A DNA stretch of 64,000 nt from Vitrella brassicaformis CCMP3155 (taxonomy: Eukaryota; Protista; Chromerida), in NCBI GenBank assembly GCA_001179505.1, contig CDMY01000086.1, forward strand, positions 62,001 through 126,000, read 5' to 3'. The notes under the pieces are model-generated. The model was not told where the DNA came from, searched no databases, and was given only the letters and a program-made list of their open reading frames with translations. Within the stretch, counting starts at the first letter, position 1. The number at the start of each line of letters is the position of its first letter. This document shows positions 27,561 to 38,523 of this stretch, piece after piece. Both the position numbers and the translations under genes were made by a program.

Positions 27561-28519
27561 CGTTGCTGTTGATCAGCTTGAGCAATGGCTGCGGGAATTC
27601 TCAGAGGGGGAGACGGCTCTCGACTGCCAGTGGCGAGTGGCTCTCCAGGGACGTCAAGTGCAGCGTATCGACGCAAGGCTGCGATGATGCGAGGAGCAAG
27701 GAACCAAGGAACGGGAGGGAAGGGAAGGACACTCCTCAAGCGGGCCCCAAACGATCGAGTTGGGGACTTGTGCGCGTGTCAGCGTACGACGAATGCACGT
27801 TGGGACAACCGGATCAGTCGCTTCAACAAACACCAACTCACAAATACGGCCACCGCCGAATTCAACCACAGCGTCAGCACACAGCCGGTCACACATGCCA
27901 GTGGACCCACGAAAACCCTACGAGTGCCAACTCAGATCCATCGTCATATCTGCCTGGCCAGCAAGTAGCGTACTCAGTGAAAGATGTACCCGAGTGTTCG
28001 AGATACTTCGTCTCGATGAAGGGTCATGCCCCTCCCCTCCTCGCTCAGAGTCTGCTCCTACAGATGATGCCTCTCTGCCATGCGTATCAACTTGCAGATC
28101 CCCACCAAGTGACTGATGCCAACACGCATGTGTGCGTGCCTGCACGAGTCTCCCGCCGATGGTGATGCACAGAGCTGACCACGCCGACAGAATGGACACT
28201 CACTATACACAACATCGAGTGCGACAGCTGATAAAAAGACGACCGAGGCAGGCAAGCAGGCAGGCCTTACAGTCAGTTAGTTCACTTAACAAATACCACA
28301 TTACGCAACCGCACACACCCCCCTTGTTCCTCACGCAAAAAGCGAGATGAAGCTTCAGAGAATGCGCTGCAACCCCATCCGACAATGCACCCACCCAGCC
28401 ACTCAATGTCTCACGCAGCGACACAGGCACCGCACAAATGAAGCAATCGGGTACTAACTTAGACTGTACAACCACCCGCCTTTGCCTCACGTGTGTGTCA
28501 ATCAATCGCCATCAGCCAT

Positions 28520-29037
28520 CTATGGCCTCCGTTCCCGCAAGGACGATGGGTCGTTGAGGAGGTCCTCTCGTGTTGGCGTGCAGAAACCCGCGGTTGAGCC
28601 GGCTCCAGACGTGCAGGCGAAAGAGCAGCACTCGGTGTCTGACGAGACCAATCGTGACTGCCCCGACTGTCCATCGTGTGTGTTCATCGCTCATGCGTAC
28701 CGTCAAAGCATTCTGCCCCTGCCGGGCCGCAGCCCCCGAATGCTGCTGCAGGCCCAACTCCGTCTCTGTCGCCGCCAATGTAGCCGCCGCCCTGCAGCGA
28801 CCGCAGGCTCGGGTGCTTGCCTAAACACATATATACAGTACAGTGAGCACAACACGCTGCGGTGCGTGCAGCCGGTTGGCTCATTTCTGCCCTCTCTCTC
28901 CATCCTGTTCTGTCCTTCCGTATACCCTTGGCGAGTTCCTGGTGCACCACGCCCACTTGGGAGTCTTCACATCTGGCGCCGAGAAGGATGATGGCCAGGA
29001 GAAAGAGGCAGATCCGCATCACGACGGGCATCCTCAT
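28520..29037 (-). CDS. Small secreted cystine-knot (knottin-like) prepropeptide, 3 exons, about 110-116 aa
   Basis: Exons 29037 (or 29019)-28926, 28820-28701 and 28638-28520, both GT-AG and phase-consistent. Signal peptide MRICLFLLAIILLGARC; core GCGPAGAECFDDTECCSFACTSGAGSTAGFC. Confidence 0.75.
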
Positions 29038-29175
29038 CACGCGGGAGCAGACAGTGATGGCCGAAATATCGGGGAAAACCAACAGTTGACGATTGCCAGG
29101 ACAATTGAATCCGTATACAGCTCTGGAAACCACGTCCCGTCTTCTTCCTGCTTTCCTTCTTTCTCGAAAGACTCA

Positions 29176-34940: not shown

Positions 34941-37900
34941 TCAGGCCACATCAGGCAGCAGGCTGGCGGGCAGGATGCCCTCGCCCCCCACCCCCCTCTC
35001 CCTCAGCCCCTTCATGCACCCGACATACAAGCCCACATGTCCGTGGTGCAATGCCAGCCTCTGCAGCAGCTGCACCTGCTCCACACTCGCATACCCCTCG
35101 CCCCCCGCACCCAGCCGCCCCATGCACACGTGCCTCGCCAGAGACGCGAAGCACGAAGGCGTCATGAGCACCTGCTTACGATGACTTGGGGTGGTGGTGG
35201 TGGGCTGCTGGTGGAACAGGGGAGGCGGCACGTGGGTGTTGCTGCTGCCAAACGACCGTGCTCGGCGGGCATGTGCGTGTGTGTGGGGGGCGCCTCTCAG
35301 GCGGCTGCCGCGGCCGAGCGCACCACCACCACCACTGCTGCTGCCGTCTGATGTGTGGGGTCTTCGGTAGTGGCTGGAGGGGCGAGTGTGAGGACCGGGG
35401 TGAGGGTGAGGGTGAGGGTGAGGATGGGCCTGGGGGGGCGTGATGTCTGGTGGAGGTGGGGAGGGGGAGAGGGAGACCAGCCGCTGGAAGTACGACAGGA
35501 TCAAGTCCTGAAGCTTGTAGGAACCCACCTGCATGCATGTCGTATGTGTGTGTGGAAGAGACACAACGCACATCCGGACTCTTTATTGGTGGGCGGTGGG
35601 CTGCTTACATTGATGTCTGGGTCACTGAGGACCATTGCCAGGGGCTCTGGGGGCACGCTCAGCAGATCATCCCTCCCATGATTGCCGAAACTCTGGGCCA
35701 ACACCTGTAAGAAGGTAAGCAGTGGCATTCCCTTCCTCCCCATTGTGTCTCCTTCCTTCTCCTGTGTGACCTTGCAGCATTTGTCCATGAGGCCCCTATG
35801 GTTCATGGCGACTGCGTGTCTCAGCAGCTCCAGGCAGTCGTCCTCATTCACAGCCGCATCCCCACACACGTCTCCAGCACACCGCCGCAGCAGCTCCGCT
35901 CGCCCCTTGGACAGCAGAGACCGGTACTCCCTCTCCGCATCGTCGACCTCATTATCAGATGATAACGCCTCCTCCTCATCCTGCTCATGCTCATGCTCAC
36001 AGGGTGGGGAGGCGGGAGGGGACATGCGCCACGGCTCCTCTTCTCTCACACGTGGCTGGTGCGATCGGGATGTGGCTGCTGCTCCTGGCGGCATGCCCTT
36101 CTCCGCATTCTCGGCGGTACTCGCTGTCGCAGCAGAAGGGGAGTGCTGTTGCTGCTTTGGGATGCGAATGGATGTGGGGCTCTTGGGCGGCTTCCCGGAG
36201 GGCGAGAGGGGTGCCCCTCGAGCAGACGCCGGACACGGCGGCCGGGGCGAGGTCAGGGGCTCTTCCTTGACCCCGGTCGGTCTCTCCTCCTGTGTGTGTG
36301 TCTGTCTCGGCGTTCTTGGCGTTCTCGGCACGGCCCTTTCATCACTATAATGTTGGAAGAAGGTCGTCACCCTGGGCGAAGGCGCCTGAGAGCTACAGGG
36401 CGACCCCTCGTTGCTGCACTCCCCCCTGGCCTGGGCCTGAGCAGCCCGGAGAGGGCTCCTGCATGCGAGGGGTGTGAGGGGGCGGCCGATGCTGACGCTC
36501 TTGGTGATGAAGAAGGAGGACACCTCAAACCCTGCCTCTGTGCGGCCGGTGGGCAGGGGGGAGTCGATGCAGTCGTCACCGCTGCTGCAGTCGGGCAGCC
36601 GAAAGCCTGTGGGTGGGGCGGGGAACTCATCCAAAGGGCTGGTCGGCCGGCCCATGCCGCGGGATGTGCGGTTGCCCTCGCCTTCCTCCATGCATGGCGG
36701 CTCGATGTCCATCGAATTGTCCTCTTGCTCGTCGATCGAGGGCGGATTTTTCTCGTTACTATTCGCCGTCGTGTGTGTGTCTCCTCCCCAGTTGTTGTTC
36801 CACCTGTGTCTCCGGCCACTGCCGGCTGGAGCTGTCGGCGGCCTGCCCTCACAGCTGCCCTCTGACGGCTGCTTCCCCTGCTGCTCGCCGCGAGGAGAGG
36901 CCCTCAGTATGCGGCCTCCTCTGGTGGGCGGTCTTGATGGCGGTCTTCTGGAAGGGGGAGTGCCCCCTAAAGCGACAGAGGGGCACCTCGGGGGCAGTCC
37001 GCATGTCTCTCTGTCCCTGCCCACCAGCCGCCCCGTTCTCATCCCGCCGGGCGTCGACAGCAGCCGGGCGTTCTGAATCTCCTGCACCAGACGCACCGGC
37101 ACCGACGGCAGGGATGCACGGAGGAGGCGAGAGAACAGCCCGCCTTTCTCTCGGTCGCCACCTCCGTGGGCAGATGACGGCCTCGATGGCCCTTTCTCCT
37201 GACTCCTCAGGCAGGGATGCGCCATGACCCGCTGCAGGAGCTCATCCGGCACCCCGGAAAGAATGACTTGTGATGGGGGAGACAGTGTCGAAGCGACGCC
37301 TCGCGCAGTCCACAGCAGCAGGTCGTTGAGAGAGCGTTCCAGGGAGGTTTTGAAGAGCAGTGTGGCCGCCTTTGCTGACCAGGGAAATGGGGTGATGCTG
37401 TTGACGAGGGAGAGGGCGAGTGTCTCGCTGACAGCAGGCTGGTGTGCGATGTAGTGTGCGAGTGCCTCAGAAAGAGTGAAGGGCGGGAAGGGGTGGCGGC
37501 ACTTGTCGCTGTGCAGGATGGCGTTCAGGTGCAGCGGCTCCATGGCAAGGATATGCCGATACGCGTCGTCGGCAGCCTCGTCTGACAGAGATGACACCGG
37601 CGACGGGCTGCCGTCTCGAGAGCTCTTGTCCGTCGTCTTGGGTGTGCTCTCGGCAGAAGCTTTCCTATCCTCCCTTGGCAGGATCTCAGGCAGGTTCGCC
37701 GCCAGGTGCTCGAGAGTAGCCCGCTCCACATGCCCCAGTCCGCCTTGCACGCCGATCTCCCTCAGAGTGCCGAGTAGCTCCAGAGCCCCGGGCGCCCCGT
37801 GTTTGGTGATGTGTGCGTGTAGGAAGCCAATAACGACATGGAAGAACCGCCAGAGCCCGAGGACATCGGCCACCTGGAAGAGCGTGACGAGCTCCTCCAG

Positions 37901-38353
37901 TTCGCTGTCAGCCATGGTCCTCCGCCATCGGTCGTCCTTGTAGTAGAAGAAATCCAACACGGCCTCGAACAGCCGCGGGGTGCATCTGGGGGGCAGCAGG
38001 CAGCTGAGGTCGGTGGCCCTCTTGCCGCAGCGCTGGTCAAACTCAGAGTCGAAGACGCCCTTGAAGAACAGAGACGCCCGCTCCCCTCCCGCCAGGAACA
38101 CACGATGCACCGCATAGCTGCGGCCGCCGAAGCATATCTGCAGGAAGACACATAGCCATGCTTGCAATGGTGTGTGAGATGCATGCGAGAAGAGGCAGCT
38201 TGCCTGATGGTCTGCAAAGGGGCACTCGCCTTCCCACGAGGGCCCTCCGTCGCGCAGTTCCTTGGCCCCTTCGAAGCCCAGTTTTCCGACTTCGGACAAA
38301 GTGAACGCGAAGGTGTCGGATGCGATGGAGGGGCTGTAGGCCACTGCCGCCAT
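34941..38353 (-). CDS. BTB/POZ-domain protein with a long low-complexity middle region; 3' end approximate
   Basis: ICFGGRSYAVHRVFLAGG..SLFFKGVF...FEAVLDFFY...VTLFQVADVLGL, within a 1006-codon open frame. Confidence 0.78.
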
Positions 38354-38382
38354 TATCTTTTTCCAGCTCCCTTTTTCGAGGC

Positions 38383-38411
38383 GCGAGCTTAGGTGTGAAT
38401 TTGAGCTCGCA
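38383..38411. promoter_or_regulatory. Two oppositely oriented GCGAGCT motifs in the BTB/ETFDH divergent interval
   Basis: GCGAGCTTAG at 38383 (+) and AGCTCGCA at 38404-38411 (-). Confidence 0.55.
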
Positions 38412-38523
38412 TTGGTGCGCCGATTTCCTTTTGAACGTTGTGCGTATCTGAGTGTCGATTGCCATTGCCAGTGCCTGTTGGTGTGATAAATCATCAGCGA
38501 CGCTGATTTTTCACACGCCATTC

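Follow-up and report, generated by a model that had tools for sequence, protein, structure and literature searches.

A transcribed three-exon gene of Vitrella brassicaformis predicted to encode a secretory precursor with a knottin-like six-cysteine core

Gene structure and precursor anatomy

The window analyzed here, a 64,000-nucleotide stretch of the Vitrella brassicaformis CCMP3155 genome, carries on its minus strand a three-exon gene with coding parts at 29037–28926, 28820–28701, and 28638–28520. Introns of 105 nt (28821–28925) and 62 nt (28639–28700), read from the window sequence, separate them, each with GT–AG ends and each in phase 1. Coding exon 1 comprises 112 nt from the ATG at 29037 to the boundary GCC AAG G/GTATAC and encodes residues 1–37 plus the first base of the Gly38 codon, spanning a predicted signal peptide and the start of a spacer; it is 81% identical to exon 1 of a paralogous locus, C1028 (see below). 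Exon 2 (120 nt) covers residues 38–78 with the conserved stretch KHPSLRSLQGG, the Gly-rich disordered spacer, and Cys I and Cys II. Exon 3, which encodes residues 78–116 with Cys III–VI and a conserved tail and ends in the stop codon TAG at 28522–28520, matched the two paralogous loci C587 and C1028 with E-values of 1e-8 and 3.4e-5, respectively. Intron 2 falls inside the six-Cys domain, after Cys II and before Cys III.

Comparison with transcript assemblies revealed that the translation of the spliced exons is identical, letter for letter, to a 116-aa ORF flagged complete in an MMETSP transcript (P0001). The 90% cluster of this ORF also contains a JGI ORF (P0003) and the annotated protein CEL92529.1/A0A0G4EB87 (P0002, 110 aa), an unnamed product in the public annotation that corresponds to the same protein read from the second ATG (29019). 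The 1205-nt JGI transcript contig behind P0003 (L013) is identical (100%) to the window over three blocks, 29159–28926, 28820–28701, and 28638–27800, and thus confirms both splice junctions at base resolution, with the qualification that the MMETSP and JGI assemblies possibly derive from the same MMETSP reads and are not necessarily independent. The ATG at 29037 (MRMPVVMRICLF...) is the first AUG of the known transcript; the 5′ UTR, at least 122 nt long (29038–29159), contains no upstream ATG, and the 3′ UTR extends for at least 720 nt (27800–28519; L013 positions 365–1204 match 28639–27800 at 100%). The window gene is an intact, transcribed three-exon gene of V. brassicaformis, and its precursor has 116 residues, or 110 if translation starts at the second ATG. 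The exon number and the intron lengths and phases given in a preliminary description of this DNA, like the acceptor and exon 3 frame on which that description depended, are borne out by the GT–AG ends, the identity with P0001, and the L013 blocks, which also supply the transcript check of the junctions that it had proposed. Its peptide sequence was likewise reproduced by the exon translations; it had, however, been written from the second ATG (29019), while its coordinates began at the first (29037).

Three further observations concern the transcripts and reading frames. Intron 1 is in frame and free of stop codons, being bridged by a 149-aa read-through ORF, and its retention would add 35 residues, including four extra Cys, with the frame kept; in the observed transcripts it has been removed. 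At its start, L013 departs from the 5′ UTR: its nucleotides 1–11, with the next 4 nt, match 28979–28965 inside exon 1, most probably through misassembly and not as a spliced leader. An antisense ORF of 169 aa on the plus strand (28482–28991) was rejected, since the GT–AG introns and the conservation in paralogs fix the gene on the minus strand.

The precursor begins with a predicted signal peptide at residues 1–23 (MRMPVVMRICLFLLAIILLGARC; 28969–29037, minus strand). Its n-region, MRMPVVMR, precedes an 11-residue hydrophobic core (residues 9–19, ICLFLLAIILL; mean Kyte–Doolittle value (KD) 3.6), an AF2 helix spans residues 5–21, and LLGARCE is conserved in the C1028 paralog. Cleavage would probably follow Cys23, with small residues at −3 and −1 of ARC/ED by a rule-of-thumb assessment of the predicted site, or Ala21; the latter cut would leave Cys23 as an odd cysteine. 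The signal-peptide-like N-terminus of the preliminary description thus finds support in these heuristics (Arg in the n-region, the core, and A-x-C at −3/−1). A post-signal spacer of about 44 residues follows, which is Gly-rich, with a Gly/Ala/Ser/Pro fraction of 0.45, and disordered, with pLDDT below 50 at residues 24–66. The paralog alignment showed that its start, SQVGVVHQ..KHP.LR.LQGG, is conserved.

The six-Cys core occupies residues 68–97 (28580–28731, minus strand, interrupted by intron 2). It is 30 residues long and acidic, and its Cys spacing is C-x6-C-x5-CC-x3-C-x10-C. Recounting of the loops (6/5/0/3/10) and calculation of the net charge (−4; pI 4.1) agreed with the spacing and the acidity claimed earlier. 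The C-terminal tail (residues 98–116; 28523–28579, minus strand) contains TPTR-x-[DE]-LL, conserved in the paralog alignment, and the terminal L-R-E-R-R-P; two short helices were predicted by AF2 at residues 101–106 and 109–112.

Two candidate processing sites were found in the precursor. The motif L-R-x-L-Q-G-G, at the end of the conserved spacer part, is kept in the window gene and in C1028; as a short motif, it would be frequent by chance, and the end of the propeptide that the preliminary description placed near RSLQ is likewise putative. The second, [SD]-L-R-x-[KR]-R, is followed by just one or two residues and then the stop codon. It occurs in the window gene (28523–28540, minus strand; RERRP before the stop) and in C587 (L012:2273–2290, plus strand; RQKRIY before the stop), the pair of copies that diverge most, and is absent from C1028, in which the frame ends right after LLNPP. 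Judged by its sequence, this terminal basic motif could be a convertase-type site, or else a C-terminal sorting or binding motif.

Paralogous loci and selective constraint

The genome contains only three loci of this family by six-frame exon searches, a family profile, and a degenerate DNA pattern (E-C-C-x3-C...F-C-x-P). These are the window gene, C1028, and C587; the genome-wide pattern search suggested in the preliminary description thus yielded two further loci, and the six Cys are kept in both. The leader exon matched only two places in the genome and the Cys exon only three. Weak matches at C367, C317, C221, and C446 (E 0.2–0.8) were attributed to chance, and C392, which fits the DNA pattern, was rejected owing to an in-frame TGA.

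The locus on C1028 (L003:1510–1894, minus strand) is annotated as CEM39175.1 (P0004, 86 aa) and has the same three-exon structure, with phase-1 GT–AG introns of 56 and 68 nt at the same two positions. Its leader is highly similar to that of the window gene, its spacer is shorter, its Cys spacing is C-x6-C-x5-CC-x3-C-x7-C, and its tail ends in ...TRDELLNPP. In an MMETSP transcript from this locus (P0005), intron 2 is kept and Cys III–VI would be lost, whereas P0004 represents the spliced form; compared with the annotated start of P0004, the P0005 ORF begins 27 codons farther upstream, at another ATG.

C587 carries an apparently unannotated copy of the six-Cys domain in two segments on the plus strand (L012:1990–2085 and L012:2171–2293). 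It keeps the spacer end (IG..GVGP), all six Cys (6/5/0/3/10 if spliced as inferred), and the tail FCTPTRTDLL...RQKRIY. The leader exon of the family is missing from this copy, and the intron in the domain is in phase 0 and lies 4 nt upstream of the position occupied in the window gene and C1028. A possible upstream exon at L012:1504–1893 would join in phase 1, recreating the Tyr of "YIG". A HMMER protein search, a word search with the putative upstream exon, and a metagenome and transcript DNA scan with exon 3 yielded no annotated protein or transcript for C587. All three loci retain, besides the six Cys, the motifs G-C-x-P, D-[ST]-E-C-C-S, and G-F-C-x-P-T-R-x-[DE]-L-L. Since two paralogous loci keep the six Cys and the exon structure, apart from the differences at C587 described above, the Cys pattern is more than a chance arrangement.

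Analysis of substitutions between the window gene and C1028 over 83 aligned codons gave a pS of 0.50, a pN of 0.16, a dS of 0.83, and a dN/dS of 0.21; by exon, dN/dS was roughly 0.2, 0.35, and 0.1 for exons 1, 2, and 3, respectively. In comparisons with C587, synonymous sites were saturated (pS 0.82–0.86), with pN of 0.36–0.39 (window gene versus C587: pS 0.86, pN 0.36), which shows constraint on the C587 frame. Nucleotide alignments scored against shuffled controls reached z values of 7–14 for exons and, weakly, 1.6–3.6 for introns, and were about zero for the 300-nt flanks. By these measures the family is an old duplication under purifying selection, and neither a chance ORF nor a fast-diversifying toxin family. 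Such selection speaks for a partner that is itself conserved, possibly a molecule of the alga, and not for a rapidly changing antagonist.

Predicted fold and database relatives

The loops of the six-Cys core fall inside the inhibitor cystine knot (ICK) consensus, C-x(3-7)-C-x(3-6)-C-x(0-5)-C-x(1-4)-C-x(4-13)-C, both in P0001 (6/5/0/3/10) and in P0004 (6/5/0/3/7). A C-C-CC-C-C framework with loops of these sizes is, as far as is known, nearly always an ICK. AF2 models of the two proteins were made without an alignment, and whole-protein pLDDT was about 59. The P0001 model has, besides the N- and C-terminal helices, a core with pLDDT of 72–77 and a β-hairpin (85–88/95–98) between Cys V and Cys VI; the P0004 model likewise has a hairpin (66–68/73–76), and core pLDDT across the two paralog models was about 70–77.

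Structural searches with these models returned mostly knottins, at scores that were all below significance. A Foldseek search of the PDB with the P0001 model gave nothing significant (E at least 0.26, the best value), and its list was dominated by knottins, the non-protease part including maurocalcin, imperatoxin, robustoxin, SOTI-III, tachystatin A, asteropsin, PAFP-S, ALO3, and the double-knot toxin. The VIA wide search, covering 48,161 representative chains, found 27 chains with Z of 2 or higher, nearly all of them ICK peptides aligned over almost their full length; the top hit was Tbo-IT2 (Z 3.6, the maximum; rmsd 2.2; 38 of 39 residues), and others were δ-atracotoxin-Hv1, Hc3a, AgRP, μ-agatoxin, conotoxin GXIA, and tachystatin B. 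The neighbors of the P0004 Cys domain were δ-atracotoxin, purotoxin-2, δ-conotoxin EVIA, bidentatide, AgRP, and the amaranth α-amylase inhibitor. Feature neighbors in the ESM Atlas were clusters of spider ICK toxins with scores of 0.79–0.84, all below 0.9, and serve as a lead only. We consider it probable, from spacing and models, that the core folds as a knottin (ICK-type) mini-domain with three disulfides. The ICK pattern asserted in the preliminary description was therefore upheld in part: the spacing fits the consensus and almost all predicted-structure neighbors are knottins, but every fold score is weak.

The same Cys pattern could belong to a disulfide-rich mini-domain with non-knotted connectivity or a new fold, the knottin likeness being a modeling artefact. 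This reading, which we regard as unlikely, draws on the weakness of all fold and sequence scores, on the chance that AF2, run free of alignments, defaults to the commonest fold for C-C-CC-C-C, and on the Dickkopf_N/colipase-like and other small disulfide domains that the Atlas structure search also listed. Against it, the spacing lies within every ICK loop range, and paralogs differing in the last loop (x10 versus x7) both model onto knottins, with rmsd of 1.1–2.3 Å over 28–38 residues and 21–42% identity, values that imply aligned cysteines. A different assignment comes from the automatic name of UniRef100_A0A0G4EB87, "WAP domain-containing protein", by which the gene would encode a protein with a whey acidic protein (four-disulfide core) domain and likely a serine-protease inhibitor of that family. 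The central C-x5-CC-x3-C does resemble the middle of the WAP signature. The domain, however, has six Cys and not eight, the other two Cys lying in the signal peptide at least 44 residues upstream; Pfam WAP (PF00095) matched neither the whole protein nor the exons even at E ≤ 10, and no WAP structure appeared among the fold neighbors or the PDB sequence matches. The automatic WAP name for A0A0G4EB87 is not supported, and we judge membership in that family to be extremely improbable.

Sequence searches placed the relatives of the gene in Vitrella alone. HMMER comparison of P0001 with 1.84 billion representative proteins, a set of annotated or ORF-called sequences in which an unannotated small gene of Chromera or another alveolate would be missed, found relatives only in Vitrella, and a scan of JGI metagenomes with P0001 found none. 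The sole two matches outside Vitrella, long proteins from ENA metagenomes (P0006 and P0007, E about 3e-5), proved to be tandem-repeat/PKD-like repeat proteins that scored through 5 and 11 repeated stretches and have no matching Cys pattern, and were set aside as artefacts; short Gly/Ala/Cys-rich queries can gather such repeat artefacts at seemingly significant E-values. In Pfam, no match above threshold was found for any exon, the intron-1 read-through ORF, or P0001–P0003, and hence no sequence-level membership in a curated knottin family; the best knottin-type matches, both below threshold, were Conotoxin (PF02950, E 0.89, 11 bits against a cutoff of 25.1) and Conotoxin_I2 (E 1.1). A weak Neurokinin_B match was confined to the signal peptide and was dismissed. 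The best matches in a PDB sequence search, bleogen pB1 (5xbd) and the sea-anemone toxin AcaTx1 (6nk9), are both knottins and align Cys to Cys, at E of about 1. Pfam was equally uninformative for the long ORFs up to about 10 kb away, and genomic context adds nothing; an uninterrupted 1006-aa ORF (35501–38521, minus strand) gave only sub-threshold matches to BTB/POZ (E 0.0026) and Hamartin.

Comparison with named systems showed a general likeness to ICK peptides such as spider and cone-snail toxins, AgRP, and tachystatins, which share the six Cys with these loops, a precursor of signal and spacer with the Cys module near the C-terminus, and the hairpin predicted here between Cys V and Cys VI. 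Unlike them, the Vitrella core is acidic, a conserved tail of 11–19 residues follows Cys VI, a phase-1 intron lies inside the domain, and the family evolves slowly without diversification; the knot itself is putative. The plant group of PAFP-S, Mj-AMP, and bleogen pB1 has nearly the same spacing (C-x6-C-x7/8-CC-x3-C-x10-C). Bleogen pB1 shares C-x-P-x-G-A-x-C, CCS, and AG..G-x-C with the Vitrella core, in a match that is not significant (E 1.1), and PAFP-S (1dkc) stands in the Foldseek list at 33% identity. The x5 second loop and the charge of −4, set against cationic plant peptides, place the Vitrella core outside this group, and no sign of common descent with it was seen. Modular ICK toxins with a C-terminal helix (purotoxin-2, δ-atracotoxins) also combine a knottin-type core with a short helical C-terminal extension, which in our case is predicted; the alignment of purotoxin-2 (2mzg) spans 46 residues in one model and 41 in the other, and δ-atracotoxin-Hv1 ranked first or second. 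In contrast to these toxins, the Vitrella tail is not a cationic amphipathic membrane-active helix, and we know of no counterpart to its TPTR-x-[DE]-LL motif.

Proposed function and its alternatives

The anatomy and predicted fold suggest a route by which the product may act. The signal peptide would direct co-translational entry into the ER, where the acidic core would fold oxidatively into a compact three-disulfide module; this module would be exported and would then act by stoichiometric binding, either outside the cell or in the secretory lumen. The gene product is probably a prepropeptide of the secretory pathway whose knottin-like module would bind a protein or a wall component, as inhibitor or ligand, and would be neither an enzyme nor a membrane-lytic peptide. 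We infer this function from the scaffold class alone.

The preliminary description had presented the gene as a candidate antimicrobial or toxin peptide. In such a role, a knottin freed from its precursor would act on the coral reef against microbes, grazers, or competitors. The prepropeptide layout and the ICK-like core do resemble venom knottins and the defence knottins of plants and arthropods; the structural neighbors include tachystatins, PAFP-S, ALO3, and many toxins; and between the window gene and C1028 the leader has changed less than the mature part (pN 0.10 in exon 1 versus 0.15–0.24 in exons 2 and 3). The strongly acidic core is, however, unlike that of cationic antimicrobial knottins, and with three loci only and the low dN/dS, down to about 0.10 in exon 3, the family lacks the diversifying selection that typically marks toxins and defence peptides. 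Because the core is acidic, the family small, and dN/dS low, a lytic antimicrobial or arms-race toxin is less likely than a conserved inhibitor or ligand; purifying selection and acidity thus weigh against the earlier label, and we hold an antimicrobial or toxin role to be distinctly unlikely. Still less probable, and in our estimate very unlikely, is a reading of the N-terminus as a bipartite plastid leader (signal plus transit peptide), the usual type in algae that have complex plastids, with the Cys domain working in the plastid or thylakoid lumen. In its favor, Gly, Ala, Ser, and Pro abound in the disordered 44-residue stretch after the signal, and Vitrella has a complex plastid (PMC4501334). 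Yet this region begins with Glu-Asp and holds five acidic residues (net charge −1), and, unlike most transit peptides, it shows strong conservation between paralogs over its first 25 residues. Nor does it have an aromatic residue at the predicted +1 position, as such transit peptides in chromerid and heterokont leaders typically do.

A wider interpretation, beyond the secreted inhibitor or ligand favored above, is that this is the first alveolate knottin family, which may have arisen independently in the Vitrella lineage. Its maturation might be venom- or neuropeptide-like, with removal of the signal and cuts at L-R-x-L-Q-G-G and R-x-[KR]-R, and its product a ligand or inhibitor that is conserved and works outside the cell, with possible roles such as cell–cell signaling, sporangium or zoospore development, or control of wall or hydrolytic enzymes. 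We put this forward tentatively, as possible and still doubtful. Alveolates are not among the knottin sources listed in PMC5753296, and Vitrella is an alveolate alga; our literature search turned up nothing on chromerid knottins or on the accessions given here. The gene itself is already in the public annotation; the present analysis adds its interpretation as knottin-type, the family of paralogs with the constraint acting on it, and a correction to the WAP name.

If the knottin-type reading is true, an expressed, conserved family in a chromerid would extend this scaffold to the alveolates, in a free-living relative of the apicomplexan parasites. With a peptide of only 30–50 residues and conserved motifs outside the Cys, this small, slow-evolving family would offer a tractable entry point.
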